A program made the translations under genes and the position numbers. From the NCBI GenBank assembly GCA_048013815.1, contig CM106586.1, positions 23,126,001 through 23,190,000 of the forward strand: a stretch of DNA of 64,000 nt, in the 5' to 3' direction. The stretch's first letter is position 1. Every line of letters begins with the position of its first letter. The notes under the pieces are model-generated. The model was not told the DNA's origin. It made no database searches and saw only the letters and a program-made list of their open reading frames with translations. The stretch comes from Setoptus koraiensis (lineage: Eukaryota; Animalia; Arthropoda). Positions 1 to 33,922 of the stretch are shown in pieces.

Positions 1-46
1 AATAATGACCAACTAACCGGGCCGCAAGCCCACGACATACCCACAC

Positions 47-190
47 CACTTACCTAGACAGTTACCTAGACAGTTACCCAGACAGTTACCCAGACACTTG
101 CCCAGGCATTTGCCCAGACAGTGGCACAGACGCTGGCATAGACGCTGGCACAGACGCTGGCATAGACGCTGGCACAGACGCTGGCACATG
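47..190. repeat. 12-bp minisatellite, 12 units, drifting from CAGTTACCYAGA to CGCTGGCAYAGA
   Basis: Units read directly: cacttacctaga, cagttacctaga, cagttacccaga x2, cacttgcccagg, catttgcccaga, cagtggcacaga, cgctggcataga/cgctggcacaga alternating, cgctggcacatg. Confidence 0.9.
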
Positions 191-2700
191 CGCCTGCCAA
201 CTGGCTTGACTCGACTGGTGGCGAGCGCATTTTTCATTCGCCAGCCTCAAATTCGGGCCCCAAACGCGCGCCATTGAACAGCCGCGCTCCGCTAAGGGCC
301 ATTCGTCTATTTGGGGCTACGCGACAGAGCCCCTGTGGGTCGCATCTACACCCAGACAGTCCCAGTCGAAGCGTTTGGATGTTTTACGAGCCGAGAGTTT
401 TCGTGCCAAACCAAAATCTAGACACACGCTCTTGCGCCATTATCATTGTTTTGACCGGCAGTCGGGCCGGCACTGCTAATCCGCTAACGGGGCTCCCCCC
501 CCCCGGTGCCAGCTTCACCAGCATATCCGACACACGGCCGCAGACCGCTGCAGCGCGTATATTGGATTCACTAATGAGGGCGCGCGTTGCAAACTTTTCA
601 TCATTCTCAACGAGCATGCAACGAGCCGGCTCGTCCTTGCCAGCGCTCGTCAGGGTCGAGTTAATTCTGAGAGTTCAGCTATTTGCATATCGCCCAAATG
701 ATGTCGGCAACTCGCTGGCACTCCTGAGGCCCGCCGAGGTCCGTTGGGGCCCGGCGATTGTATGTGTTTCGAGTGTGTTCGCATTTGTACATGGAAATTG
801 GGGCCCGAGTTGTGCGCAAATGTACGCCGCAAGCTGAGCTGTGCCACAAAAAGGTGCGCAACTGGCATGGTTGGTGTTACCATTGAGTTACATGATTGCA
901 TTTTGAATGTTGGCGATTGAAAAGGCCAAAATAGCGGGGCCAAAATGGGCCAGCGGTGGTCTAATTGCGCCGGCCAGCCGCCGGCCGATCCAATAGTGTC
1001 AATGGGGTGTGCGTGATTTATGGAATCTGGCGACAAAATCAACAACAGCGCGCCGTGGCAAACTTAACAGTGACACTGCCAGTGCAGATCCACATGACTG
1101 ACTGACATTCAGTAATGTCATGGACACACACCGTTGCTGGCATTTCAATGGGAGCGCGTGGGGGCACGCAATCACAATACATGCTCCGTCATCGTCTGGG
1201 CAAGAGATTTTTCGTCGTCGTGATCGGATTGTTGAGCAACTCGGCCTGCCAAACGACAATCGCCCGACAGCAAACGGGCAAGCGCTTAGAGGCTTAGCGA
1301 AACATCAATATTTGGCAATATTACCCCCGTGTATATCATCTGCTGCAGCTTGACATTTCCACACAAACAAGCGTCAACCAAACAACAACAACGATTACAG
1401 CAGCGACAATGACAACAACAACGACAACAACAAACGCGAGAGAGTCCTCGAGTAGCTAAACATTTAAACGCCAGCGCGCGCGATTATATCCGCCGATAAC
1501 CGACCTGTCTTATCTGTATTGGCCGCATTATCTGTTTGTAGCCGCGAGTGTGTGCTCTCGACGGGCATGTTTTTTGTATTATGTAACAATAGCAGAATAA
1601 CAATTATTATCAACTGTCAATTACATTGTGTAAGCCGAAATGTGTTTTTTTCGTCTTCGTCTCTAGCGCTTTTTTTTTTCATTATTTATCACGTTCAAGC
1701 CACATACTGTTACATCAGCGTAATGCACCCTGTTGTCGTTTGCTCCGGCACAATTTGCTCCTCTTTACAACGTTTGTATACTACGTACGTTGAGTCAACT
1801 ACAGTTGTATTACGCAACTCTCGTGCACTATGCTCTCTGGCGCGTAGTCGTCCATTTTGTTTACTAGCACAGGTAACACGATCTACACGCAGGATATACA
1901 AAAATTATCTATTTCATCTTATCGTTTGCTCCATGTCACTTGGCTCTAATCCTGCACACAAACACACACACACACACACATACATATCGTGCTAGAGAGT
2001 GCGGGTTAGATAACTTATAATCTATATGCCATATCAGGTAAACATGGCGCCGATAAACGTAGCCCCCGATAGCAACGATATCCTCGCCCGGCCAAAAAGC
2101 TCAGCGGCGAGAGCCAAGTGTCCGCTTACTGTGCCCCGTATACAGTGTATACATAAAAATGCACATATCTCCGTCTCGAAGGGGCCTCACTCACACTCAT
2201 ACGGCACGACTTATACGGCATTAGGCACCCTGGGGTGAGTGCGCACACCTCGCGAGCCCGGGGGTTCATTTTTGACGGGCACCACTATCGGAAATAAACT
2301 TCAACACGTGGTGACGGTAATTATTCGCCGAGGCTCCATCGATGCATCGAAACACGCTGTACTTGGTCGACTGCAGTCGGAAATTTGTGCACCTCTACGA
2401 AGCTTTGAAGTGCTGCGACGGTGCTGCAATGGTGCCGTGCCCCAACTTTAGTGTCGACAGTGATTTGGTTAACCTGACAGTCGAGATGCATCTCAGCTGA
2501 TTGTCAGCCATCAGCCATGATTCTTGCTGGCAGGCCCATTTCGCCCGTGATGCCACCAGGAAGAGCCTGAGTTGGCTGCGAACACAAGTATGGCTAGCAC
2601 AATGAGTGTAAAATGATATTGAAATAAGAGAATTTTCACTAACGAGTTGGTGAAAATTGTAAGCTGAGGCGGACACTGGTGCGGTTTTGAGTTGTCTCGA

Positions 2701-2755
2701 CAACTGCAAGAAATTGCAATAAATTGCAAGAAACTGCATGAAACTGCAAGAAATG
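2701..2755. repeat. 10-bp degenerate tandem repeat (AAAYTGCAAG-like, about 5 units)
   Basis: caactgcaag aaattgcaat aaattgcaag aaactgcatg aaactgcaag. Confidence 0.7.
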
Positions 2756-5700
2756 AAATGTGCTCTTCGTGTGTCATGTCGTATTCAGGCGAGATTTGTC
2801 ATTTCGCTCGGTATACAGTCGTTTTGCTGGTATCTGTGGTGCCTGGTGGAGCCTGTTTGATGTGAGTGGCATATGCCAACATCAAGTTGAAATGTCGAAG
2901 AAAGTGAGAGAGCGAAAGAGACTTTTAGACTCACTGACAATGCACACTGGCAGATTGGCAGGCTGGCCGCCTAATCAGATAAGCAGTGGTGGCTCAATTT
3001 GCCAGCGAGGCCCCAGTGAGGCCCTCCTTTCAACTTGGATCGCTTGAGTCGCCTCGCTGTTGTGACTCACAACTTGACGCTGCTGTGAAGCGACCACCAT
3101 AAATCATAATTTACCCAGGCGCGCACATATCACATCTATATCATGCCGTTGATATAGATTAATTCATACAATGATCAATGATCGCTGGATCATAAGCTCC
3201 AAATTAGCTCAACCAGCGCAGACAGCACGCGATTGGGCCGCGCCGGCACCACCAAGTGCTCAATCGAGCGACTTGGCACTCAATCTAGCAAATTTAATTT
3301 AGCGTGCTCATTGTAATAACTGTGCCACTGGCCCATTGCTGGCAAGCTCGCTGGCTGGCTGGCTGGCTAGCTGGCTGGCTGGCTTGTTGTTGCAGGGGTT
3401 GGGGTTCCGTTACCTAGAGCGAAGCCCCGCTTTGCCTCAAAACAAGCTAGGGATTCTATCAATCACTGGCACGCACAACCAACCAGACTTAATGACCTCT
3501 TCGCTACTTATCGAAATCCGCCAGACAGTATTTGCCTAGGCTCTGGGCCACGCACTATCCCGAGAGTATCCCAAACAAAGCCAGCGTCTACTCACCGAGG
3601 GTATAGTTATCTGTTCTGTCTAGCCAGAAAATATATATATATATATATATATACAATTGTCCATATACAAGCAACTCATTGTGTGATCTCTCATTGCCGC
3701 TCGTGCTGTATTCAGCCAGAAATTACGTCACACTGTTGTCGGGCGGGCCCCAGTACGCGCTACTGTGCGTCATTTTTAATAGTATTAATACTATTATCAT
3801 TATATAACCGCGCCATATGTTGTTGTTGTTGCTGTTGCTGTTGTAGTATTTTCACAGTCGACACAGGCTCAGTCAGCTAGTGGCGCTGCCGCTCGCCTAT
3901 CGTTACAGATATAACGTTACATATTAGCGTTCGCTCAACTCGGGCCCCTAGACACACTCAGAGGTGCACTCAAACCACCGTATGGGCACTCGTATTTGCT
4001 GTAACACCAGCGACACTTTGAAATTGAGATCTACTTTGAAATTTGTCGCTGATTACACAGAAGCCCACTACTCGATAAACTTGACCCTGTCGTTGTTGTT
4101 GCCGTTGTTGGCGATGTTGTTGCTGCTGTCGTTGCTGCTGTCGTTGTTGGTGTAAGGCCGACAGCAGCCAACTGCTGAATATCACAACAATTCAACAGCA
4201 GTCGCAATTATATTATTGGCCTCAAAATGAGTGGCTATACTCACTTATCTAGCCGAGAGGTAAGCCGAAAGGGAGTTGCATCATGAATACTTGAGCGGCA
4301 CCGTGATGACCATGAAATTTCTGCTAACAGCATATGTAGGTGACAGGCTACAGGCTCTAGATGAAAACATTAAGTTACTTTACGACACACACACACACAC
4401 ACATTCATACATGGAGAGAGAACTTAACCAATTGGATGACTTTATCATGGGCAAAATTAATATCATACTAGGGACCGATAACGAGACCGTAAGTAACTCC
4501 GACAATAAAGCCAGTTGGCGAGTGCACTTGAACAAATGAATCTCTACTGATCGTACGAGTGTGCATGAGTTAAAGGTAAGCCCATATGTGTACAGGTGGC
4601 TATCAACCTGATTGGTGTCAACTATAACTCTGTCATTGTCCGAACACTGTCCAAACCGCGGTACATCGCGGCGAGTAGATAAAATTATTTGCAGCTAGCT
4701 AACTGGCTAACTCGCTTGCTGTCTAACTGACTCACTGGCTGGCTCACTGGCTCACGGGTGTGCTCCAATGGAGACTCAAAAACGTGATTGATGATAGCTA
4801 CAGATGATAATAATCAAATCTAGTCGTCCATCCTGTTTTGCTGCGAGCGTGGTAAACTGTCACGGAACTGTGTGACAAGATGCCAAACCATCACAAGCAT
4901 CTCTGTAGATCTGTAGATCTGTCTATCTCAAAGTCATCCCGTTCGCCTTCTACCTGATACGATGATGTTGTTATGATCTAGTTATCACGCGAATGACTCT
5001 GGCTCTCTTTGTAAAATCCGATTCACTGCCATCAACCGAGAGAACTCACTCAACTAAATTACTTTCTCCGAAATTGTGAACCGGTGGCGCACACACGTTT
5101 CGTATGGCTATGTGATTTTGTCAAATCTTATCATCAATCTAGATTATTCAATTTTGTCAACCGACACCCTTACGCTTTGCCTGATATAAATGTGTGTGAG
5201 TTTAAAAATAAACTTACCGCTGAGTCTCGCTTGCCAACAAGGTTGCTAAAATCAATTATAAACATAGTAGTAATCGGCAAAAGCTAAATAGGACAACGGC
5301 ACTGACTTGTGAAATGGATTCGAAATTTGGCGAATGCCGTTCGAAATTCACAAGGTTTCACAAGGTAACCTGGGGAAACTTAGCTCTCAGATATAATCAA
5401 TCAGCCGAGTGTGCTAATGACATTAATATTCATAGTGTAATTAGGCATAAACTATATCACAGTATTAGCACGAACAATGTAGCTAACTTTGTTTTTTCTC
5501 AGTATCGGCTATCTAACCCAATGTACCCAATGTATGTATCTAATGCAAATCGAACATGTTTTGACGACAAACATCCAACAAATGCCTCAACATTCGCGCT
5601 CACAAGAGACTGTCAAGTTGGTGCCAACTATCCGTGGTGCGTAGATTTGACTAATTAGACATACCGGTCACAATACTGATATTACTCGTGTCTGACACCA

Positions 5701-7067
5701 CCGAAAAGTGCCCTCATCACGACATATCCAACCGATAATATCCAACCGATAATATCCAAGCAATGAGCTCATTAGACAGGCTTAAAAACTTTTTCTGTAG
5801 GAAACTACCAACTGATTCTCGTGAGCATACAAAGTATTTGCAACAACAAAAAAAATACTGTCAGGCGGTAGACGGATGATGCAAAAATGCAAGCTGTGCA
5901 AAGATTGTTATCGCTTGGACACACTAGACGAACAAGTGCAGTATCGCAGACAATTTTTTATTTTTGGCTTCAAATTTGGCGGGCAAAACTCTCGAGATAG
6001 GGTTCACAGTGACTGTTGTGTCTAGTCTGGATGCACTGTGTGCCATTTCCCAGTCGCTTTGAACATTGTTCAAAAGGAATCCGACAGGGCGGCGCTACTT
6101 GGCTTACTGTAAGCAGCGCAAGCGAGCAGCAAGGGGCAGTTGTGCGAAGGATTGCCAACTGGCGATGCAGCCCGTACGCTAACTTGTTAAAGAGCACGCC
6201 GAAGGCAGGCAATCAAAAAAAGGTAATGATCAATGAGACAGTCTGTGTTCGAGTGCACATTTTTTGAGCGATGCCAGCGCCTCTGGCGAACTTTCCTTGA
6301 GCACGGTTTGGAAGGGCTCACAAAGTATGTGTGTGTGTGTTTTTGTGTTGTTGTTGACGCGATTGTGCTAGTATAGAGCCAATGTGTGTTGTGGCCAGCG
6401 TTCCAACTTGGTGAACACCCTTGCGTTAGGGAATGTGCATGATCCTATATGACAAGTGATCAGCAGCTAGAATAAAAGCATTGGAATATCTGCGAACTTG
6501 CGTCATACATATACTCTGCCAATTGGTTGTACAGATAGTGTAGAGATAATAGTACAGTGCACAACAAACACACACGCACACAAGCACACACAGACGGACA
6601 GACAGACAAATGGGTATAGTGCAGCGCAGAGCCACACAGGCAAGAAATACACTGAATTCTCTCTATCTCTGTATATCTTTTCTTTCTGTTTCTCTGCTTT
6701 GAGTTAATGCACAATAAACAATAACAGGCCAATACACTACACTACATACACTACGAGATATATCACTAAAAATATATATATTCAAGGCAATGCGATCAAT
6801 TTACATTTGATTCTATATATTCGAGATTTATCCCAACACACCAACACACATACACACCATCTACTACCATTGGTGCCACAACACAAATATTAAAATAATA
6901 AATAAATAAATATAATTACAATTAAATAAATAAATAAATAATATTAATAACGATAAATAAATGAAATCTCGAGTTTCAAGAACAGCATCATCTTCGAACA
7001 TTGCGCTTATTGAACTGGATAAATAAGGTAACAACAACAACACATCAACAACATTGTAAACAACAAC

Positions 7068-7848
7068 ACACAATAAGGAAAAGAGTCGAGTCATAGCACC
7101 AGGATCATAGCTATTGGTGATCATTGTTTAGACTCTTATTAAATCGTCAGGACTAGCACCACGATTTTGATTTATATTACGATTAAGACGACGCAGACGA
7201 CGACAAACCATTACAAAAATGGGAATACCAAAATTTTTCAGATGGATGAGCGAACGGTACCCGGGTCTTTGCATGACCGCAAAAGAATATCAATTACCTG
7301 AGATTGACAACTTCTACTTAGATATGAATGGCATTATACATAATTGCTCACATCCTTGCGATGGCGATGTACACTTTAGAATAAGTGAAGAAGAAATGTT
7401 TGAAGATATATTTAACTATGTTGAAACTCTCTTTAAGATTATTAAGCCAAATAAGTATTTCTTTCTGGCCGTTGATGGTGTGGCACCTAGAGCAAAAATG
7501 AATCAACAACGTGGAAGAAGATTCAGGTCAGCTAAGGAGGCTGCTGAGCGAGAAACTGCCGCGGTTCGAAAAGGAGACATATTACCCACCGAGCAACGTT
7601 TTGACTCAAATTGTATCACTCCAGGAACGACATTCATGATTAAATTGAATGAGGCATTGAAAAAATTCATTGAAACAAAATTGACTACTGACCCTAGCTG
7701 GCAGCATGTTAAAGTTATACTATCTGGACATGAGACACCTGGCGAAGGTGAACATAAAATAATGGACTTTATCAGATTTGAACGCTCTCAACCAGGTTAC
7801 AATCCTAACACCAGACATTGTTTATACGGATTAGACACTGATCTAATA
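7068..7848 (+). repeat. Left arm of about 780-bp inverted repeat (XRN1 5' flank plus first 210 codons)
   Basis: Reverse-complement match to 14485-15284, compared line by line. Confidence 0.95.
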
Positions 7849-9696
7849 ATGCTCGGTTTGGCATCTCATGAGCCCTATTTTATGTTACTCAGAGAAGAAA
7901 TCAAGTTTAACAATAAGAAGTCCAACAATAAGGATATAGCCCGAGGAACATCGCAAAGGGTAGACTCATCTAAAATAAGTTTTCATGTACTCTATTTGAC
8001 ACTTCTGCGTGATTATATCGAGAGGGATTTTACTGTACTCAAGCCAAATTTACCATTCAAGTTTGATCTAGAGGCTACCATAGACGACTGGATATTGATA
8101 TGCTTTTTGGTGGGAAACGATTTTATACCTCATATTCCTCATTTCCATATACATAAAAGTGCACTTCCTCGCATTTTTGAAGTCTATCAATCAGTTCTGC
8201 CGGAGTTGGATGGATATTTAAATGAGAATGGTTTTCTCAATTTGAAAAGATTTAAGAAGTTCGCAAACAAATTGTCCCTCTTGGATATTGACAATTTTGT
8301 CATGTTACCAGACAACAAACCGAATGGTAACTATTCATCCGCTAACAGAAGATTGAACGGTTCTTGCAACAACGGATTGCCAGACAACAAACAAAACGGT
8401 AATTATTCATCCGCTAACAGGAGATTGAACGGTTCTTGCAACAATGGATTGCCAGATAACAAGCCGAATGGTCATTATTCTTCTGCCAACAGAAAATCGA
8501 ACGGTTTTTGCAACAACGGATTACCAGATAATAAACCAAATGGTCACTATTCATCTGGCAACAACAGATTGAATGGTGTTAGCAATAGAACTAACAGATA
8601 TCACACACCAAATGGAAAGGTCGGTGTCCACAGCTTCACCGAGGAGCAATTGAATTCATCTATTAAAGTTTGTGCTGATGGTGATTTTATGGACTTGTCC
8701 GATGATGATTTTGATAGTGATGAAAAATTTCCGGGTGAGCCACCGGTAAAGAGTAAACATCAATTCGACAAGAAGAAAGACAAGGTTAACATCATGGAGA
8801 TTTTTAGAGAGCATAAACTGGATTATTATCGAACAAAATTCAAGATCAATCCCGATAAGGAGACTGTCCGTAATATCACTCATGAGTATGTACGTGCATT
8901 ACAATGGAATTTACATTATTACTATCATGGATGCGTTTCATGGGGGTGGTATTATCCTTTCCACTATGCTCCGTTTATATCAGACGTCACAGATTTTATG
9001 TCAGTCGATCTGAAATTCGAGCGCGGTGCGCCATTTAAACCATTTGAGCAATTGCTAGCCGTTTTGCCCCCAGCAAGTTCGGGCTTGCTGCCTAGCATCT
9101 ACCGGAATCTTGTAATGTCGTCGACCTCACCATTATCTGAATTCTTCCCAGCGGACATAGAGTATGATTTGAATGGGAAGCAAAATGAGTGGGAAGCAGT
9201 TGCGTTAGCTCCGTTCATTGACGAGAAAATTCTTCTCGGTGCAACTACTTTATGTAATTTGTTTCTCACCGAGGCCGAGCGGGGGCAGAATGTACTTGGC
9301 CCTCACTTTTTGTATGAATGCAAGCTGATGCGTATTGGGCCACCACAGGGACAGAACAATCAAGCTGGACGTGGTGGTGACCACCAGAAACCAAGAGTTG
9401 TAGCCAGGATCAAGTGTACTAAAATTAGTTTGGACGGGTTCCATCTAGCCACCAATAAGATCAAGTTTGGTTTGCTGAAAGAACCCAAGTCGAAGCAGGG
9501 CTCCGACTCCGAGGATAAAGATGATTGCTTGGGCTTTCCTACACTATCAGCGATTGAGCATAAGTTCAAAGATACGCCTAAGTCTATCAACAATAACGGC
9601 AATAGATTTAGATCCAACAGGATAAAGGACGTTTTGGTTCGACCTGCTTGGAGTGGCTCGGCTCGGCAATACTCAAGAAATAAGGGATGGTCTTAA
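7219..9696 (+). CDS. XRN1: 5'-3' exoribonuclease 1 (XRN1/Pacman), intronless, 825 aa, lacking the usual C-terminal domains
   Basis: MGIPKFFRWMSERYP start; catalytic acidic motifs YLDMNGIIH, AVDGVAPRAKMNQQR, GEGEHKI, GLDTDL, VGNDF; CR2 motifs WYYPFHYAPF and PFEQLLAVLP; XRN1-type GFPTL..I.HKF near the end, then a stop at 9694-9696. Confidence 0.95.
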   Translation: MGIPKFFRWMSERYPGLCMTAKEYQLPEIDNFYLDMNGIIHNCSHPCDGDVHFRISEEEMFEDIFNYVETLFKIIKPNKYFFLAVDGVAPRAKMNQQRGRRFRSAKEAAERETAAVRKGDILPTEQRFDSNCITPGTTFMIKLNEALKKFIETKLTTDPSWQHVKVILSGHETPGEGEHKIMDFIRFERSQPGYNPNTRHCLYGLDTDLIMLGLASHEPYFMLLREEIKFNNKKSNNKDIARGTSQRVDSSKISFHVLYLTLLRDYIERDFTVLKPNLPFKFDLEATIDDWILICFLVGNDFIPHIPHFHIHKSALPRIFEVYQSVLPELDGYLNENGFLNLKRFKKFANKLSLLDIDNFVMLPDNKPNGNYSSANRRLNGSCNNGLPDNKQNGNYSSANRRLNGSCNNGLPDNKPNGHYSSANRKSNGFCNNGLPDNKPNGHYSSGNNRLNGVSNRTNRYHTPNGKVGVHSFTEEQLNSSIKVCADGDFMDLSDDDFDSDEKFPGEPPVKSKHQFDKKKDKVNIMEIFREHKLDYYRTKFKINPDKETVRNITHEYVRALQWNLHYYYHGCVSWGWYYPFHYAPFISDVTDFMSVDLKFERGAPFKPFEQLLAVLPPASSGLLPSIYRNLVMSSTSPLSEFFPADIEYDLNGKQNEWEAVALAPFIDEKILLGATTLCNLFLTEAERGQNVLGPHFLYECKLMRIGPPQGQNNQAGRGGDHQKPRVVARIKCTKISLDGFHLATNKIKFGLLKEPKSKQGSDSEDKDDCLGFPTLSAIEHKFKDTPKSINNNGNRFRSNRIKDVLVRPAWSGSARQYSRNKGWS
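8305..8580 (+). repeat. In-frame 72-nt (24-aa) tandem repeat x~4 inside XRN1
   Basis: Units start at 8305, 8377, 8449 and 8521 and encode LPDNKPNGxYSSANRRLNGxCNNG variants; the fourth unit is partial. Confidence 0.92.
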
Positions 9697-11752
9697 GACA
9701 GACAGACCGCGAGAGAAAGGGAGAGCGAGAGAAGAGCGAGAGAAGATCGGGATGGAGAGAGAGAGAGTAAAGTAGAGAAGGAAGGAGGAGGGAGAGAAAA
9801 AAAACAGTGGAGAGAGATGGAGCGTGTGAGCGAGAGAGAAAGAGAGACAGTATGCGAAAAAGGGAGAAAGAAAGATAGAGGGGAGAGAGAATGAGACAGG
9901 GAGAAAGAATGAGACAGGGAGAAAGAAAGAGAGAGAGAGAGAAGGAGAGAGAAATTGTTGAAATAAAAAAAAAACTGGTTCTGGCTAGTGACAGAGTTTG
10001 GAGCCAGTTCAAAAAACAGTCTTGCGCACCCTTCCAGTTAATCTCGATAATAATTTGGACTCACTTGAATGCTAACAAAGAGCAAAGCATGTTAATTTAT
10101 ATAGCGCTTAGCCTTATCAGCCACCTGTTGTTTTGTTATACCTATGTTGTTGTTTGTTTGTTTATGATTGTGTGTGTAGTTCTGAATCTCGTTGTGCTCA
10201 CTTCTCTCATATGTCATCTTCGAAGTTGTTGTTTCGTTATCCAGTTTAAGTGGAAAATATTTGCCACCATGTAGAACGACAGCAACTGGATGAACGGTAT
10301 GGGTAGCAATGATAATTTTGTTGGAAATGCTACGTTCATTGCTCTTGCTTTTTCTCTCTTTTTTTTTCTATTCAATGCAATTTAATTTGCTACAATCATT
10401 CTATCAATACAAGTTGATCCATTACTATCTGCGCGAACGAACTAAGAAGCCAATATTGTTATCACTTGATCACGTTGTTCATTGTATATACTATATTGAG
10501 CTTGTCGCCCGACCAAATATCATACACACATGCACACACAAACATAAATCGACATATAAGCAAGCTACTCATCTGGTTAAAACAATTAAGGTTGTAGATT
10601 TTGTCGTGACGGTCAGCCAAAGTTGTTTCGGTAATCAACCTAGGTAGGGGCACACTTGTCAGACAAGGTACAACACTAGCAAGCTTGTGTGTGTGTCGCT
10701 GTTTTTGCATGCTTGAGTTTAAAAATCAATAGCGAAAGAGTTACGCAACTTTTGTTGTTGCGTGGTGTTGTTCTAATTAGTTTACAGTTGCCTTTATTAT
10801 TGTTGTTGAACAACTTCAACCACTGCTACCTCAGCTACGCGCGCTTGTTTGAGTCACTGACACTAAAGGGACCAAGCATGCAAGCAAGCACCAGCGGCAA
10901 CAACAACAGCAACAGCAACAACAAGACCATGTTGTCTAGCAACGAGCAAGCGACAGAATATGCCATTAGGCATACGTATGCGATTATTACTATTATGATT
11001 AATATTACCATCATCGTCGTCGTCATCTGATGACCGTGCGTCTTGCCATTACGGTTGTTACGTAGCTACTTATGCAACGTTATTTTTCGAAACTGCCCCG
11101 TTCGCTCTACCTACTCGTACACACAGTGTTTATCCGTTGTGTTTGGTTCTTTTCTTTCTCTTTGCTTAGCTCGGCCGTAATGTTTGTGCGTGTCTATGAT
11201 AGACCAACTACCGCTTTATTTATCGTGCAAGCAAACGAACAAGCCAAGACCAATCATTTACATGGCATCTCACGCACACACACTAGATTGTGCCCTAGTT
11301 ACCAATTAGAATGGTGTGGTGGCGAAGGAATCGTAGTTATGAAGAATATCGTCATGTCAACCGTTTGAACACGTAGCAAGTCCACGTCCGTCCATTTACT
11401 TGGCTCTGTTCCTCGTGTCGCAAACAATCATTTGAGAAATAAGAAGCGTGATACATTAGTTTGAATTTCAGCAGAAAAATCATCACCCCGACATGTCCTA
11501 GACAGTTTGCAGTTTGTCACACTGAGAGAGAGAGAGAGAGCGAGAGAGAAGGAGGACACACAATACACAATTGACAGAAGCGTGCAACCAAAGACGAGAC
11601 GGGATAAAAATTGCGTTGCAAATGCGAAAGTATTTCGGAGACACATTCAAATCTATAGTCAACGGAGTTTAGTAGTTCTAGATTAAGTACAGGACACTAT
11701 ATTCGTAATTTTTTCTCGCAGTGACAATTGATTTGTCAAATCAATACACGTC

Positions 11753-13915
11753 ATGAAACGACAACAACAACAGCAACTACAACCGACTAATGGTAGTCAA
11801 AGTTGCGCAAGTGTCTCATTGAGTTCATCTAGTGTGTCTCTAGCTGCAAATCAGTCAAACGATGTTGTTGCTGCTGATGAAATAACAACAAAGCAAACTA
11901 GCGATTCTCAACTGGATGATAACACAATTCGATTGCATAATGAAAATCATTGTTTCGGTTTGGTTTATCATGAAAGCGAACGTCATCATCAGCTGAATAG
12001 AAGCCCGTGTTCGTCTACTTCGTGGCGAGCCGATTCTATGTGCTCAGGCAATTCTTCGTCCTCCACTGTGCAGCAACAAAGCAGCCCGGAAGAAGAATAC
12101 AACAACGACGACGAGGAGGCTTCATCGTCCAGTGATTATGGCCGAACTATTAGCAACAACATTAATAGCGACACTAGTCAATTAGAAACAAATAATAACA
12201 ATGGCATAGCAGTGAGACTCAAGAGATACATGTCAATCAGCAACAGAAAGAATCGCCACATCAACAAAAACAGTATGAGTGTTAAAAACAACATGACTAA
12301 TAAACGAACAGGAAGCAAAAAGTTACCCATTGACGACTCAATAGAGCAACTACTCAACGCGAATAGACGCCAGATCCAAATAACAACCTGTGCTCAGATA
12401 TATAATAGATGGCGCCTAACTAAACGAATCTACCACAAGGCACCCAAGAACGGCATTCAATTGGAAGTGGATTACATAGACACTGGTATCACCATGGCGA
12501 GTCACCTGAGAGACAGGGCACCTATCGTGCTCGCCCTGCACGGAGCCCCAGGCTCCTATACAGACTACGGCCTACTAATACAACATTTAACGGGTCAGAC
12601 CATCAGAGTGATAGCGCCAAATTTCCCGGGTAAGTGTCGAAACGTTTTATCGGTTATAATTTAAACATGCTTCATAACTGTTTGTCATTATAATCCAAAC
12701 TTTTTTTAATCGTTCAACCATTGTATTATATCACTAATGGGGCGAAACAGAATATACTGCCACGGTGGAAACAAAGACCATGTTTAGGCATTCGGCAGAT
12801 GAAAAGGCCTCCTATTTGAGGGACTTTTTGCGAGCTATCAATGTGAACAGAATTGATCTGTTGGTGTCGCATAGTAGCGCCGTTTTCCCCTCTCTACTCA
12901 TACTGTTAAACGACAATCCTCATTACGAATACAAACAAATGAACAACATAGATGACAACAACGACAATGGCAAAGAGCAAACAAATTACGGCGACAATAA
13001 AGGACCCGAACCAACCTCCGATTATCACATTCAAATAAGAGCACTAGCATTATTTAATCCGGCCGGACATCGGCTGCCACAATCAATGAAACCAACTTGG
13101 TTCAAGTGTGGCTCGGTGCGTATTTATCAGAACAAAATTGGAAGGATATTCTTCCAAAAATTTGGCTCGGAATTTCTCACAATTGTTGGTGTACCTGTGC
13201 GTGTGAACAATATGGATCATGTAATGCTGTCCGCAACTGTGATGCGCAATAGTGAATGCCAACGTGTAGTACACCAATTAAACTATTTGAGTCAATTAAA
13301 ATTGCCCACACTTCTAGTATTTAGCGAAAATGACAAACTCATCGAGAAGGACATTTTCTATGAGATGACCCAATTTATGGGGTTGAATAGAAATCACTTT
13401 GATATATTTAATCATCAGGGTCAGGTCGAACAAGCACGTAAGTATTCGTTTGAAGAAGAGGAAAGAGAGAAAGGAAAAATAAATTGAGAAACCTGTTGAT
13501 TCTCGAAGGTGAAATATATAGAGATGATAAACATCAAAAGTCTGATAAGACTAACCTGACTTATTCTCGTATAATCGTCTCAAACGCCATGTATCTATAT
13601 TTAAATATAGATTCTCAAAGAGACAACTGGATTCGCGTCATGGTTTTCAAGGCGGGCGGCCATTATGCCTATTCAAATTATGCCAACACTGTCAACAAGG
13701 CCGTCACTGAGCTATTATGCAAAGTGTGTTCTTGCTCTGATTCAAAAGCAGCAAACGAACAACAAAAGGACATGACAGGTGCCAATGATGGAGACGAAAA
13801 ACGGAGTCTCAAACTACTGTTGGACGAATCACAACACAGCGAAAGGCAGAAAGTGACGATAATAACCGACAGATTCATGCCAAATGTACAAGTCAAGCGA
13901 CATTTCAAATGGTAG
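11753..13915 (+). CDS. Alpha/beta-hydrolase fold protein, DUF1057-like; predicted exons 11753-12629, 12751-13437, 13611-13915
   Basis: VLALHGAPGSYTDY...RVIAPNFP motif; nucleophile elbow LVSHSSAV; C-terminal GGHY His motif. Phase-compatible GT-AG introns 12630-12750 (G|GTAAGT..ACAG) and 13438-13610 (C|GTAAGT..ATAG). Long Ser/Asn/Gln-rich N-terminus. Confidence 0.78.
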
Positions 13916-14466
13916 TCGATCTGTATCTCCATGGTCATTTAAATTGCCATGGATGGATAGACGCTCATTCATATCAATTGCACGCTTATTACTCACCAAA
14001 TCAAATCATTAGTATAGTGTCTCGAGTAAGCAATGAGCTCAAAAGTTTGCTATTCATTGAGATTCAGTTTGCACAAATTGGATTAATTGATTAATTTATA
14101 GAGATTTTAGATGTTGATCAACTCTTCTGTGGTGGTTACCAATTAAAATAAGAATGTAATCGGTGTTTCACACATGTATTAAATGATCTCAACAAAGTGT
14201 CAGACGATGTTCGACAATTTACTCATGTTTCCTCTAGTCCTGCGGCTAGATACCACAGAAGATAGACTGATTGCTTGTCACCTCTTGATTATATTCCCAA
14301 GGTGTGTATATGTATACCAGTAGAGAAATGAAGAGAAAGAGGCTAGCTTGAAGTGAGTTGAGGAGAAGTTTGACACGGCTGTATCGAATTGCTTACTTCA
14401 AATCTATCAAAGTCAGCCAAAATTCTTTCTAAGTCATTGACGCGTAATAAAATTTTCGTTGATGAG

Positions 14467-15114
14467 TCAACCCTTTGTGACCAATATTAGATCAGTGTCT
14501 AATCCGTATAAACAATGTCTGGTGTTAGGATTGTAACCTGGTTGAGAGCGTTCAAATCTGATAAAGTCCATTATTTTATGTTCACCTTCGCCAGGTGTCT
14601 CATGTCCAGATAGTATAACTTTAACATGCTGCCAGCTAGGGTCAGTAGTCAATTTTGTTTCAATGAATTTTTTCAATGCCTCATTCAATTTAATCATGAA
14701 TGTCGTTCCTGGAGTGATACAATTTGAGTCAAAACGTTGCTCGGTGGGTAATATGTCTCCTTTTCGAACCGCGGCAGTTTCTCGCTCAGCAGCCTCCTTA
14801 GCTGACCTGAATCTTCTTCCACGTTGTTGATTCATTTTTGCTCTAGGTGCCACACCATCAACGGCCAGAAAGAAATACTTATTTGGCTTAATAATCTTAA
14901 AGAGAGTTTCAACATAGTTAAATATATCTTCAAACATTTCTTCTTCACTTATTCTAAAGTGTACATCGCCATCGCAAGGATGTGAGCAATTATGTATAAT
15001 GCCATTCATATCTAAGTAGAAGTTGTCAATCTCAGGTAATTGATATTCTTTTGCGGTCATGCAAAGACCCGGGTACCGTTCGCTCATCCATCTGAAAAAT
15101 TTTGGTATTCCCAT
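14467..15114 (-). pseudogene. XRN1: Truncated inverted duplicate of XRN1 5' region (215 aa; first 210 aa identical, then LVTKG-stop)
   Basis: No mismatch found by eye against 7219-7848. Identity ends at 14485. It lacks the VGNDF catalytic Asp and the whole CR2 region. Confidence 0.9.
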
Positions 15115-15284
15115 TTTTGTAATGGTTTGTCGTCATCGTCGTCGTCTGCGTGGTCTGCGTCGTCTTAATCTTAATATAAATCGAAATCGTGGTGATCGTC
15201 CTGACGATTTAATAAGAGTCTAAACAATGATCACCAATAGCTATGATCCTGGTGCCATGGCTCGACTCTTTTCCTTATTGTGTA
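14485..15284 (-). repeat. Right arm of XRN1 inverted repeat
   Basis: Reverse complement of 7068-7848. The 5' non-coding ~150 bp carries about 6 substitutions, a 1-nt indel and 18 nt of insertion relative to the left arm. Confidence 0.95.
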
Positions 15285-15500
15285 TTTTTTTTTTACAACG
15301 ATATCTTATTTATTTAGTTAACGTATTTTCTAAAGGTGATGATGCCTAAAATTAGATGTTTGTCGAATCTTACTAGCGCTCATTGTTGTTGTTTTAGTAA
15401 AATGAACAAAGAGGGAAAGACGGTACAACTTCATGCGACACTAGTGGATTGATTCTATTTACATTAATAGCCTAAAACATTTTCCTCAGTCGGGTTTTCT

Positions 15501-17409
15501 TCATCTTGGTATAAGTTCTAGTTCAAAACATTTCTCATGAGGATCTATGGCAATCGAACCCTTAGGGCATATTAATTTACGTGTAAGCTCCTTGTCGACT
15601 GGTTTTATAATAAAATTCATACAAAGATTCGCAACTAATACTATTGTAGTTGTTTCCACCATCTTGAAACCAAGACACATCCGTTGGCCTTGGGAAAATG
15701 GTTTGAAATGCGCCGGCAATTTAACCTTTTGTCCACCGTCGTTAGTTTTACGCAAAAATCTTTGTGGCTTAAATTGTTCTGGGCAATCCCACATGTCCTC
15801 GCACAAATTAAGATAATAATTATTGAATAGGATAATAGTTCCCTTCGGTACATGATAATTATCAACTGTCGTATCCTTATTCGCCACATGGGGCACTATC
15901 GGAGATGATGCAAGCCGAAGGGCCTCATTCAAAGATGCCTCCGCCATTGGGAGATAAGGCTTGTGCGATAATGTGATATATTTCGCTTCACTATTGCAGG
16001 AAGTATCGTTGCTTTCTTGTGCCATCTTGTTACTTTCTGAAACACATGATGAATTGAGAGCATTTCTAGCTTCTTCTGCTATAAGATCTTGAACGTCTCT
16101 ATCAAGCGCCAAGTGTCCTAGAAGTCTCATCAGTATGTTAGCAACAGCGGCATGTCCAGCTACTAGATCGGCGAAACCAACCTGATAATCGGCCAAAGAC
16201 ATGCTGCTCTTTTTTTCTAAATGATCCTTGATTATGTTATCTAAATAGTCAGTTTGCGAACCTAACGATGATTGGTGTTCCAGAAGGCGAGGCTGGAATA
16301 TCTTATTGTCAATAAAGTCTCTGGTTTTCACAATATAAATTAAAAGAACCGAGGTGAGGATTGTTAGCTCTGAGATTGACTTCAAGCGTTCGCAATTTAT
16401 CACAAATCGCATTCACAATACAAACAAAATGTTAAATGAGACAAGAGAAATTTGTTCGCGCCACTTTAGAGAGTACCAACCTTAGATAATCTGTAACCTT
16501 TTTGAGATGTTTCAAATAGAAGAAACTGATGCCAAATGATGTCAAGAATGGTAGAAAATCAATGAGATAACAATGATTTATGTCCCAGAATACATAATCG
16601 CAACCATCGACAAATTGTTCATATTCAATATCGTCATGTCTGTAACTTTTTTTGCAAAGGAAGTCCATAAAGATGTCTGACGTTAAATAAAGTATATCCT
16701 TTTTCCGGACAACTTGATTACTTGTTTGAACATATTGAATATATTTTTGAACAAATGTGTTGATGCTGTCCTCTAGTTGCTGATGCCTAGCTGTTCCAGA
16801 GCCAGGTATCACGCCCCTTTTGCAAAACTTTCTTCTATCTTCGTGCACACTTGACCAACTGCACAAGGCCAACGAGTTTTCACGATCACCCCCAAATATA
16901 ATATCGTATCTAGGAAAATTAGGCCTGTTGGCAAAAATTTCGCCTTGGTAAAGTAGAATTTGGTTCATGGCGCTTTTACTGGACACGAGTGCCATCTCAT
17001 GAATGCCCATCTTGAGGCTAACAATGTCACCATACTCTTGACGAATTTTATTGAAGCCCTCCCAAGGATTATTGGGGTACTCTCTGAGTAAGTGTAAATT
17101 ACCAAATAAAGGAATAGTTGGTGGTCTTGGCATAAACATGAATTGTTGCTGCGTTTGGGTGGTTTGTTGTTGCTGCTGATGATTGTGATGATGTAGGTGT
17201 TGTTGTTTTGGTGGTTCATGTTGTTGATTCATTTGTTGGTGGTATTGTTGTTGTTGATATGGGCACTTGTTGCTAAATTGTTGCTGCTGCTGTTGTTGTT
17301 GTTGGTTTGGATGCTCTCGATGCTGATGTAAGAGTATCAGGGCTTTGCGTCTCTTGCACATGGCAGCAAAGGCCAACAAGATTGTGACTAAAAGTAAGTA
17401 GATGAACAT
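15501..17409 (-). CDS. CYP307: Cytochrome P450 CYP307 (spook/spookier, ecdysteroid biosynthesis); predicted exons 17409-16481 and 16320-15501
   Basis: Heme motif FSQGQRMCLG, ExxR (EALR), PEQFKPQRF. CYP307-type RPNFPRYDIIFGGDRENSLALCSWS and I-helix DLVAGHAAVAN. N-terminal TM anchor from ATG at 17409. Phase-2 intron 16480-16321 (AG|GTTGGT..CCAG) gives YLR-DFID. Confidence 0.88.
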
Positions 17410-17917
17410 TTGTGATAGCTGACACAGAAAGTAATGAAACAAATTTAAAATGAATGATTGAACGATTTACGCGATCTTACACAAATTGTTGTTGATGAAA
17501 ACTACTACTTATACTTATACTTGTACTACTACAGCTACTCTTACTGCCACTGCTGCTACACACTATCGCGAATTAATTGATTCATGTGGTGATAAAAACT
17601 GTTGTGAAAGGCTAGCATTTATTTATATATATATACTTTCTTGAATGCTCCGTCGTCGTCGTCTTGTTGTTAGTTCGCTCTCGTCACATTCAACACCACT
17701 AATGATTTGTTTGTGTACCTTGTAGCGAGTGGCGTTGGTGTGCATCATCATTGCCACCATCTTTTTGTTCCATTGAACATACTCCAAGTAGGGATAGCAC
17801 GTTGCCTTTCCCTATGTGCGCAGAACAAACAAAAAATTCGCAGGTGATTTAAAATTGGCGCTCACCTTGCGCGTGGCGAACGACGACAGTCCAGCGAGCA
17901 GCACCAAGTGATTTAGA

Positions 17918-18294
17918 TCACCACCATCACCATCACCATCACCATCACCATCACCATCACCATCACCATCACCATCACCATCACCATCACCATCACCATC
18001 ACCATCACCATCACCATCACCATCACCATCACCATCACCATCACCATCACCATCACCATCACAATCACCATCACCATCACCATCACCATCACCATCACCA
18101 TCACCATCACCATCACCATCACCATCACCATCACCATCACCATCACCATCACCATCACCATCACCATCACCATCACCATCACCATCACCATCACCATCAC
18201 CATCACCATCACCATCACCATCACCATCACCATCACCATCACCATCACCATCACCATCACCATCACCATCACCATCACCATCACCATCACCATC
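17918..18294. repeat. (CACCAT)n hexanucleotide array, about 63 units, one internal variant (CACAAT near 18060)
   Basis: Read directly from the sequence. Confidence 0.98.
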
Positions 18295-20268
18295 ATTATC
18301 AACGCTGAGCAAATCGAACTTGTCGCATCGAACCAATCGCGTCGCGCATATCGCATTGAGCCTGTCGGATCGCATCGTAACCCATCATCAAATCCCGTCG
18401 CATCGCACTGGGCGAGACACGAGATTGGCTACAATTCACCGCGAGCTCACTGTAACAATCCACATGCAGCGATAATCTTGCGCGTGCGAGCGTGTAAATG
18501 TTTTTAGCGAGCCACACTTGACATGGGGCCTTTTTCCCCTTGTTCCCCTTGTGCGCGTGTGTTCGATACAATGATGCGCGTACGCCATTTTCCTGACATG
18601 CGTCCTACATTGAATGAAGTTGAATCAGCCAATTATGTAATTCATCTCGAGTTTGTGCAGGCTACGAACCACAAGTCTCCTTATGTTTTTGTTGTTGTTG
18701 CAAAATTATCATTCTACTTCACATTGTCAGCCAGAACTTTTATTTGTGATTAATCTATGAGAGTCGCAAGTCCGGAGAAAGCGCGCACGCACATTACAAA
18801 TCTAACAGTTGCGCACGAGGGAAAAAAAGCGGGGCACGCAGTTGGATCTGTAGCCCAGACACTCACTCAAAGATGCAGACAGAGAGCGCAAGTAACGACA
18901 CGTCGCAACCAGCATAATGTTAGACTCACAAGTTGTCAGATCGAGTTGAATCGATTGATCGAGTTGTTTCTCAACCGCATCAGCAGTACGCGGGACGTTT
19001 CGTTTTGTCTCGTGGCTGTGTTTGGTTTGGCCACAAACGTTTCACTGGCTCACTTTATTTTGTATACAGTCTATCAAAGGCTCTATCACTTCTATTCCCT
19101 AACCAGCTGCCTCTAGTCACTAGAGTCTAGTGGCGCCATTAGACAGCCATCAATCTAGATCTCAAATTGATTTGCGTGTGCATCGTCTGCGTGTCTTCTT
19201 CAGTAACAGCAGCTACGCGCGCACACTGAAGGAAGGCTCATTAGACTGGCTGACAAACTGAGACACCGCGTTAGACAAAATCGAATTAATCGGGTGTATA
19301 TAGTGAGAGAGCAAAATCTATTAAAATGCAGATGGGGGCGGCACGGGGGACGCAGGAACGAATTGATGGAAGCGAACAGAAGTGTAAGACGCTTGTTGCC
19401 TGTAGCCTGTTGCAGGAGCACACACACGCAGCACACTTTTATTCTATATGTGCATCAGAATAGCATTGCACAGACTGAAATCCGAAAGTGGGTGAATGAG
19501 GTTTCAGTGTGGCGAAACAACACTTTTATGTGTGTGTGTGTGTGTGTGTGTGCGCTGACAATCTACTGTTGTTCAACGATATAGATAGATTGCTACATGT
19601 AGATTTTGCTGCTACAAACAAGAGTTGTCCATCGCCGCCTACGCAGCTGTTCAGCGATCACTAAGGCGACACGGAGCGAGTGAGTGTGTGTGTGTGTGTG
19701 TGTGTGACCATCAAAGTATCATCTTGATCACTGTTGCATCCACGACTATTTGCGTCTATTCCATCGCTAGAACTTGTAGCCTAGAAGGGAAGGAAATAAA
19801 CTTTCTCACGTTTTTTCCCTCCATTATGAGCTACTGGCTGGAAGAGCTATGCGACTGTGATCATAAGCGTGAGCGAACTATCAGACGAGCTATTATATGT
19901 GGACTTGTTGTGGCATTCTCATTTCGGCACCACCGTCACTACTCTTTTGTAGTGCGCTGACGAGCATGTGTAGCACAAGGGCTGCAAAAAACAGGGCAAG
20001 CAAGGCTGCATTGGTGCCGGCGTAGCTGGCTGCATTGTTTCATAATGTGCCTCAAACTTTGAGGCTCAAAGCGATTCTGAAATAGTTCGATTTGATCGAA
20101 CTATTTTGCACATGGCACGCACACACGCGAAGCGGAGCGCGTACACAATCGAACTAAACAGCGATGACTAGCGTTGCCGAATAGCGGCTATTCAAACGCT
20201 GTTCTATTGAATCTCGCTCACTTGTCGGGGACGCTCGCGTTCAATCGACGCTGTCTGTGCTCGCTATT

Positions 20269-33422: not shown

Positions 33423-33922
33423 NNNNNNNNNNNNNNNNNNNNNNNNNNNNNNNNNNNNNNNNNNNNNNNNNNNNNNNNNNNNNNNNNNNNNNNNNNNNNN
33501 NNNNNNNNNNNNNNNNNNNNNNNNNNNNNNNNNNNNNNNNNNNNNNNNNNNNNNNNNNNNNNNNNNNNNNNNNNNNNNNNNNNNNNNNNNNNNNNNNNNN
33601 NNNNNNNNNNNNNNNNNNNNNNNNNNNNNNNNNNNNNNNNNNNNNNNNNNNNNNNNNNNNNNNNNNNNNNNNNNNNNNNNNNNNNNNNNNNNNNNNNNNN
33701 NNNNNNNNNNNNNNNNNNNNNNNNNNNNNNNNNNNNNNNNNNNNNNNNNNNNNNNNNNNNNNNNNNNNNNNNNNNNNNNNNNNNNNNNNNNNNNNNNNNN
33801 NNNNNNNNNNNNNNNNNNNNNNNNNNNNNNNNNNNNNNNNNNNNNNNNNNNNNNNNNNNNNNNNNNNNNNNNNNNNNNNNNNNNNNNNNNNNNNNNNNNN
33901 NNNNNNNNNNNNNNNNNNNNNN
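33423..33922. other. Assembly gap (500 N)
   Basis: Run of exactly 500 n. The round size suggests a placeholder scaffold join. Confidence 1.

Follow-up and report, generated by a model that had tools for sequence, protein, structure and literature searches.

A partial inverted duplicate of XRN1 in the mite Setoptus koraiensis and its probable homogenisation by gene conversion

How can two inverted copies of one gene segment be identical at every coding position while the sequence immediately upstream of them has diverged? The question was raised by a preliminary description of a 64,000-nt stretch of the Setoptus koraiensis genome (the window), in which 630 coding nucleotides of an XRN1 gene recur, synonymous sites included, in an inverted copy a few kilobases away. 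That description proposed an older duplicate whose internal tract is being homogenised by gene conversion, and called for an exact alignment of the arms.

Anatomy of the inverted arms

Ungapped comparison of the arms in the assembly confirmed the coding identity and lengthened it by 20 nt of leader, with no mismatch in 650 nt (7199–7848 against 15134–14485; leader plus XRN1 codons 1–210). The features of the locus are as follows.

7054–7198, plus strand: left arm, diverged outer part, which is the XRN1 upstream region (alignment, motif search, anchored extension)
7199–7848, plus strand: left arm, identical tract, with 20 nt of leader, ATG at 7219 and XRN1 codons 1–210 (ungapped comparison)
7219–9696, plus strand: XRN1 gene, single exon, 825 aa, XRN_N and XRN_M (Pfam, solved-structure matches)
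7849–14484, no strand: spacer of 6,636 nt, containing the body of XRN1, non-coding GA-rich sequence and the hydrolase gene plus 569 nt past its stop (repeat search, open reading frame list)
11753–13915, plus strand: alpha/beta-hydrolase gene (DUF1057-like) in the spacer, three open-frame pieces (Pfam, open reading frame list)
14467–15114, minus strand: truncated XRN1 open frame, 215 aa, with 210 XRN1 codons, five new ones (LVTKG) and a stop (open reading frame list, Pfam)
14485–15134, minus strand: right arm, identical tract (ungapped comparison)
15135–15152, minus strand: 18-nt insertion present in the right arm only, between the TATA-like box and the ATG (gapped alignment)
15153–15298, minus strand: right arm, diverged outer part (gapped alignment, anchored extension)
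15501–17442, minus strand: cytochrome P450 gene, two open-frame pieces (Pfam on the first piece)

In the assembly the arms belong to one uninterrupted sequence, lie in inverted orientation and bracket 7849–14484 exactly; the spacer is free of N gaps, and the nearest such gap is at 33423. The inner edge of the homology is sharp and falls in mid-exon directly past codon 210, with the first mismatch at 7849/14484 and similarity absent beyond it. A repeat search of the 64-kb window recovered the same two arms and no other repeat of at least 80 nt, and an Rfam scan of positions 1–33000 gave no matches.

The outer flank presents a different picture. Gapped alignment of 7068–7198 (131 nt) revealed six substitutions, at 7091, 7095, 7154, 7156, 7168 and 7180, which lie 108, 104, 45, 43, 31 and 19 nt from the core edge, respectively. 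The right arm also carries one 18-nt insertion (15152–15135) within a GAC-type microsatellite, where the placement of the gap is ambiguous, and this insertion forms the outer boundary of the identical tract. A reading as two units of 9 nt, both bearing a base change of their own, is also open to it and agrees with the two 9-nt insertions described earlier; the six substitutions stood, and one-base indels were confined to the outermost low-complexity A/C-rich zone. The outer parts as a whole (7054–7198 against 15153–15298) are about 93–95% identical, and no difference between the arms is found more than about 165 nt from the outer junction. Weaker similarity had further been noted between 7015–7067 and 15285–15320. 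Anchored extension beyond 7068 reached a score of 13, which 16 of 1000 shuffled sequences and 5 of 1522 real-sequence controls also attained, and lengthened the homology by only 14 nt, to about 7054/15298; free local alignment of the outer flanks was not significant. The weaker similarity is thus retained up to about 7054/15298, and further out it does not rise above chance.

A full-length gene and a truncated copy

The left copy encodes a full-length XRN1, matching Pfam XRN_N (PF03159, 1.4e-97) and XRN_M (PF17846, 9.4e-85) and containing all seven conserved acidic residues (D35, D86, E176, E178, D206, D208 and D301). Its best solved chains are XRN1 (5.9e-209 and 2.9e-191), against 4.2e-141 for XRN2. 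It is the sole full XRN1 in the genome; the only other XRN gene, at C2:8.236 Mb, is of the XRN2 type, and there the order of the XRN1 and XRN2 structure matches is reversed. No Pfam match to the C-terminal D1–D4 or SH3-like domains (PF18129, PF18332, PF18334) was found in the 825-aa frame. Since the listed eriophyoid relatives (750–950 aa) also all carry XRN_N and XRN_M only, unlike the XRN1 of other mites, in which extra C-terminal domains are present, the 825-aa protein is a short lineage-specific form. Motif search of the left upstream region, which is preceded by AT-rich sequence, located a CCAAT-type box (ATTGG, 7113) and a TATA-like box (7173). Boxes of both kinds are present in both arms.

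The right copy matches only positions 1–226 of the 241 in Pfam XRN_N, and XRN_M is absent. Six of the seven acidic residues are retained (D35, D86, E176, E178, D206 and D208), while D301 and the helical domain are missing. Judged by this domain content, the right copy is a fragment and appears not to be a functional member of the XRN1 family. It sits between the 3' ends of the hydrolase and P450 genes, with the P450 gene directly upstream of it in tandem; its diverged outer part begins 16 nt past an AATAAA (15314) that is itself 3' of the P450 stop. Among the hydrolase pieces, the first two, scanned separately, gave weak PF06342 matches (1.4e-05 and 5.9e-05), and the third (13484–13915) was assigned by adjacency and strand only. 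The same holds for the second P450 piece (16432–17442), the first (15501–16412) having a Pfam p450 match of 8.5e-33. In all likelihood this truncated copy is a relic, and its open frame of 215 codons would have stayed intact as a by-product of overwriting from the working gene. Annotation pipelines will call this stump a second XRN1-like gene, and users should be warned accordingly.

A genome search returned two copies of the arm and no third that could have served as donor for either flank. Related XRN1 loci were collected from Logan, NCBI, ENA, JGI and a metagenome scan based on the 210 residues common to both copies. The nearest available ones have about 60% protein identity and different gene neighbours, the closest reaching 86% over the first 210 residues and about 59% across the whole protein. 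No second XRN fragment was found within 10 kb at the related loci L004, L007, L008, L015 and L016, and neither the exact 215-aa nor the exact 825-aa product had a match on record in the public assemblies searched. The RpL14–XRN1–Arf–Cullin order of other eriophyoids is not kept in S. koraiensis, where the Cullin ortholog lies on C1 and an RpL14-like gene at C2:15.0 Mb.

Origin of the identical core

Substitutions number 0 of 650 in the core versus 6 of 131 in the flank, plus the 18-nt indel. With all sites counted, the probability of all six falling in the flank is 2.2e-5; with the count restricted to 127 synonymous and 20 leader sites it is 0.011. The step in divergence is not due to chance. 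The 95% upper bound on core divergence is 0.46%, against 4.6% in the flank (CI 1.7–9.7), and by calculation about 19 changes would be expected in the 650-nt tract if the stump were unconstrained. The change from 0% to about 5% occurs exactly at the 18-nt indel with no gradual fade. Purifying selection as the cause of core identity was rejected because the approximately 127 synonymous sites are unchanged too.

We consider it probable (about 0.68) that an older inverted partial duplication had its core later overwritten, arm to arm, by gene conversion. A piece of about 0.8 kb, comprising the core promoter, the leader and the first 210 XRN1 codons, would have been duplicated in inverted orientation, either by a micro-inversion with staggered breaks or by template switching during replication. 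The copies would then have drifted to about 5% divergence, which is still visible in the outer 131–145 nt, the stretch on which the age of the duplication rests. Because the flank holds several separate mutations (point changes and two slippage-type 9-nt units), it presumably accumulated change over time. Subsequently, one or more non-crossover repair events within the chromatid would have copied one arm onto the other, probably from the working gene, over a 650-nt tract that starts at the inner limit of homology (7848/14485) and extends outwards. The tract halts at the 18-nt microsatellite indel, where the heterology, together with the mismatches of the flank, would stop heteroduplex from extending further. 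The step at the indel, the lack of a third donor and two further loci described below uphold the proposal of an older duplicate homogenised by conversion. However, one event suffices, and the sequence supports no claim of continuing homogenisation. Several observations run counter to conversion: the tract reaches the inner edge of homology exactly, as a very young duplication also would, the test on synonymous sites is significant at about the 1% level only, and the GC-bias footprint described below is missing.

A single young duplication followed by no conversion is an unlikely alternative, in which either an error-prone template switch of the MMBIR/FoSTeS type or a locally hypermutable promoter and microsatellite flank produced the differences. 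The crowding of all changes near the outer junction, the clustered double change (7154/7156), the slippage-type insertions and the run of identity up to the inner breakpoint would all fit such an origin. So would the missing GC-bias footprint: GC3 is 0.33 in codons 1–210 and 0.43 in the remainder of XRN1, with no sign of GC-biased conversion in the converted tract, and orthologs have no consistent GC3 offset. Such a footprint is not obligatory, and a single recent conversion event would leave none. Against the young origin, divergence changes as a step at the indel instead of declining away from the junction, and the internal conversion blocks at an EGFR-like locus indicate that conversion is active in this genome. 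Moreover, about 5% point divergence together with two 9-nt units far exceeds known junction-proximal error rates.

An artefact of assembly or polishing, whereby the right arm is unreal or small differences between the arms were erased by polishing with multi-mapping short reads, is less probable still. Missed-adapter PacBio fold-backs give spacer-less palindromes, and this source was ruled out by the 6.6-kb spacer with its two unique junctions. According to the published methods, the assembly was made with Flye from unamplified pooled DNA of more than 100,000 wild mites, using 496x PacBio CLR from a 30-kb library, with 1.13% heterozygosity and two rounds of polishing with 150-nt Illumina reads. 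Its pooled consensus, heterozygosity, noisy CLR reads and double polishing lend the suspicion some weight. However, without whole-genome amplification there are no MDA chimeras, and the MDA inversion chimera suggested earlier as a possible refutation does not apply; the right arm's private mutations exclude it as well, private substitutions and an insertion being impossible for a fold-back copy. The right arm is also joined to unique sequence on both sides, with an intact gene to either side of it, no assembly gap is nearby, and the whole structure spans 8.2 kb, well within the reads of a 30-kb library at 496x. Polishing might hide a few differences but, we reason, could not erase a divergence of 5%, because mis-mapping of short reads requires copies that are almost identical.

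It is very improbable that the arms form a functional module, kept for a 6.6-kb flip that swaps the XRN1 promoter and leader or for a regulatory product of the stump (a truncated nuclease domain, or an antisense or hairpin RNA against XRN1). A full XRN1, a stump and an undamaged hydrolase gene would be present whichever way the segment lay, both arms keep their CCAAT-like and TATA-like boxes ahead of leaders that differ by 18 nt, and hydrolase read-through would run antisense into the right arm. But such read-through must pass three polyadenylation-type hexamers (14142, 14178 and 14446, all before the right-arm start at 14485), the stump is without D301 and the helical domain, and the large frames of the spacer (the XRN1 body and the hydrolase) include no apparent recombinase candidate. 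Equally remote is a recombinational flip-flop, with crossovers between the 650-nt arms inverting 6.6 kb and both orientations coexisting in mite populations; two diverged upstream regions would then take turns in driving the sole XRN1 body, the right one lying directly behind the P450 gene with a leader 18 nt longer than the left, and XRN1 could in addition come under feedback from the stump or from read-through antisense RNA.

Probable conversion-homogenised pairs in this genome and in known systems

Two other inverted pairs on the same chromosome were re-measured. In a SERCA-type pair, 3.34-kb arms without a mismatch stand beside a 300-nt outer piece at 92.3%, while EGFR-like inverted paralogs with a 70–85% background contain an internal 949-nt perfect run and further blocks at 98–99%. 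Like the XRN1 pair, both combine a perfect core with older diverged homology next to it or around it, and by these patterns both carry clear signatures of gene conversion. They differ from the XRN1 pair in holding two full genes instead of a full gene and a promoter-plus-5' stump. The two-chromosome gall-mite genome seems rich in conversion-homogenised inverted gene duplicates, and a systematic count against other arthropods could inform on repair and recombination in eriophyoid mites.

We regard the pattern at the XRN1 pair as real, clean and ordinary, a textbook-style footprint that gene conversion, a well-known process, most likely left between inverted copies. It has one small twist, in that a housekeeping nuclease gene, apparently present once in the genome, is here paired with a stump that carries a promoter: conversion would keep the relic looking intact and could in principle feed its mutations into XRN1. 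With a perfect inverted repeat of 650 nt, polymorphism for a 6.6-kb inversion is also likely.

The closest parallels are palindromes and inversion breakpoints. PMC6790999 and PMC5490193 (the latter citing Rozen 2003) give non-crossover intrachromatid recombination as the established explanation of arm identity in gene-bearing palindromes. Palindromes have also been reported in Adineta vaga and Folsomia candida. As in the human and ape Y palindromes, the XRN1 arms flank a spacer in inverted orientation and their identity is far above the expectation from age. Unlike those palindromes, the XRN1 arms are tiny (0.8 kb, with 0.65 kb converted) and hold the front end of a gene only, one arm being a stump and not a second working copy; the age of the pair is also without outgroup support, and a GC-bias signal is absent. 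In the Drosophila melanogaster group, 17 of 29 inversions have inverted duplications at their ends, produced by staggered breaks (Ranz et al. 2007, PMC1885836). There, as here, once-unique and partly genic sequence occurs as inverted copies at both ends and one copy is a non-functional fragment, whereas the XRN1 segment is only 6.6 kb long and has no outgroup with the uninverted state. The Drosophila duplicates, with a mean identity of about 88%, are in decay (PMC1885836), in contrast to the identical XRN1 core. The XRN1 locus has a mark of each system: the segment is bordered at its two ends by inverted copies of what was once unique sequence, as staggered breaks leave, and it has a tract far more alike than its adjoining homology, beyond what constraint explains, as in palindrome conversion.

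Inverted XRN1 arms

A repeat search of the 64-kb window returned two adjoining pairs of inverted arms and no further repeats of at least 80 nt.

Inverted arms and features of the locus
7186-7854 (+) / 14479-15147 (-): inverted arms, inner pair, 669 nt, 99% (repeat search)
7058-7202 (+) / 15149-15293 (-): inverted arms, outer pair, 145 nt, 93% (repeat search)
7219-9696 (+): full-length XRN1, left copy
7849-14484: spacer between the arms
11753-13915 (+): alpha/beta-hydrolase gene
14485-15298 (-): right arm with the truncated XRN1, or stump
15501-17442 (-): P450 gene

Ungapped, base-by-base comparison of 7199-7848 with 15134-14485 gave 0 mismatches in 650 nt (20 nt of leader and 630 coding nt of XRN1), which bears out the mismatch-free coding tract of the preliminary description and includes the leader as well. 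On the inner side the first mismatch lies at 7849/14484, and similarity is absent past that point. In the outer part (7068-7198), gapped alignment gave six substitutions, in line with the roughly six of the preliminary description, at 19, 31, 43, 45, 104 and 108 nt from the core edge. The right arm also carries an insertion of 18 nt (15152-15135), readable as two 9-nt units, inside a GAC-type microsatellite. Outward of 7068 the sequence is of low complexity. The weak similarity described far out was overstated, as anchored extension found homology above chance only to about 7054/15298, and free alignment of the outer flanks was not significant.

The left copy encodes a complete XRN1 of 825 aa in a single exon. 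It has both XRN_N and XRN_M (Pfam), is nearer to solved XRN1 than XRN2 structures and contains all seven catalytic acidic residues. The right copy consists of 210 XRN1 codons followed by LVTKG and a stop (open-frame list), keeps 6 of the 7 acidic residues and is devoid of the helical domain. An ATTGG box of CCAAT type is retained in both arms, as is a TATA-like box; these motifs may form a working promoter, and the 18-nt insertion sits between the TATA-like box and the ATG. The linker between XRN_N and XRN_M in the left copy carries a 72-nt in-frame tandem repeat (8305-8585; three overlapping 137-nt copies, 80-100%) encoding about four LPDNKPNGNYSSANRRLNGSCNNG-like units of 24 residues, at which BLAST alignments of XRN1 to its relatives break. 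The XRN1 relatives found are from eriophyoid mites. Domains D1-D4 are absent from the left copy and from all of these relatives (750-950 aa); among the proteins compared (P0001-P0030), eriophyoid XRN1 has XRN_N and XRN_M only, and XRN1 of other mites, insects and vertebrates additionally has D1-D3 (PF18129, PF18332, PF18334). The eriophyoid lineage seems, from these sequences, to have lost domains to which a role in bracing the catalytic core is ascribed.

Genomic setting and assembly

The genome comprises 48.76 Mb in two pieces, and its only XRN genes are these two copies and an XRN2-type gene at 8.236 Mb of C2, the 24,533,333-nt chromosome that holds the window (C2:23126001-23190000). In other eriophyoid lineages, five related loci each have a single XRN1 with no second fragment within 10 kb; these genes are only ~60% identical, and their neighbours map elsewhere in the S. 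koraiensis genome.

The 6,636-nt spacer contains the XRN1 body, a GA-rich stretch and, on the plus strand, a DUF1057-like alpha/beta-hydrolase gene in three open-frame pieces, two of the three scanned, each singly, as unjoined exons. GA-rich low-complexity tracts lie directly past the XRN1 stop (9704-9957) and ahead of the hydrolase gene (11509-11554). The right arm is placed between the 3' ends of the hydrolase and P450 genes and begins 16 nt past the AATAAA that follows the P450 stop. The P450 gene is read as two open frames of differing phase about 20 nt apart (16412/16432), which could reflect either a one-base error in the assembly or a short intron whose ends fall within the frames. About 0.4 kb past the 5' end (17442) of the upstream P450 frame lies a very long and almost perfect microsatellite of 12-nt period (CACCAT-type, 17823-18355, ~530 nt). 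Positions 1-4000 have a G+C content of ~50%, compared with ~40% in the remaining window; neither a convincing open frame nor a match to Rfam turned up there.

The published Setoptus koraiensis assembly, the probable source of the window, was built from DNA of a pool of over 100,000 wild mites (PacBio CLR 496x, Flye 2.6, two rounds of NextPolish, 3D-DNA scaffolding into two chromosomes, N50 24.53 Mb). The sole gap in the window (33423-33922) is a scaffold join of exactly 500 N, the default gap length of 3D-DNA. We reasoned that polishing with short reads might mask a small number of genuine differences between near-identical arms and could not remove 5% divergence. A fold-back artefact was rejected: the right arm has substitutions and an insertion of its own and meets unique intergenic sequence at two junctions, features that such an artefact would not show. 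An MDA chimera is out because the source DNA was unamplified.

Probable conversion between the arms

Divergence is 4.6% in the flank (CI 1.7-9.7%), whereas its 95% upper bound in the tract is 0.46%, and it shifts as a step at the indel rather than as a gradient. Under uniform divergence, all six substitutions would land in the 131-nt flank with a probability of 2.2e-5 when every site is counted, and of 0.011 when only 127 synonymous and 20 leader sites are counted as free to change. From the divergence figures, about 19 changes would be expected in the tract if the stump were unconstrained.

The pattern is best explained by an older partial duplication in inverted orientation, after which one arm was copied onto the other in at least one repair event without crossover. 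The copied tract would have extended outward from the inner end of homology and stopped at the 18-nt heterology; conversion is well established to halt in diverged sequence through heteroduplex rejection triggered by mismatches. The proposal of an older duplicate being homogenised is supported as to conversion. A GC-bias footprint is absent in the XRN1 tract, so long-running repeated conversion gains no support, and a single recent event is enough. Most likely, the stump is a relic held open through being overwritten.

Re-measurement of two other loci showed that conversion does act in this genome. The arms of a SERCA-type inverted pair (C2:24126105-24138200) match over 3.34 kb with 0 mismatches and one gap, and a 300-nt outer piece, offset by ~1 kb in one arm, is at 92.3%. 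EGFR-like inverted paralogs (C2:21954492-21978675), aligned over 3.96 kb at a background identity of 70-85%, contain a perfect internal block of 949 nt and two further blocks of 98-99%, an internal mosaic that cannot be attributed to junction errors. Elsewhere, an RpL14-like N-terminus occurs with equal scores in opposite orientation 15 kb apart (C1:10651308-10651550, minus; C1:10666263-10666505, plus), probably another inverted gene duplicate.

Origin and comparison with known systems

The arms bracket a 6.6-kb segment exactly, which is the footprint of staggered-break inversions (Ranz et al. 2007, PMC1885836). The copies could instead stem from a replicative template switch, and both are already-known types of event. 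No recombinase candidate was apparent among the large open frames of the spacer (frame list and Pfam). A crossover between the arms would flip the segment; as either orientation would keep a full XRN1, a stump and an undamaged hydrolase gene, an inversion polymorphism of the 6.6-kb segment is plausible. The XRN1 case is real and clean, but ordinary: the pair amounts to a conversion-homogenised palindrome (PMC6790999, PMC5490193) on a small scale, built from a gene fragment.
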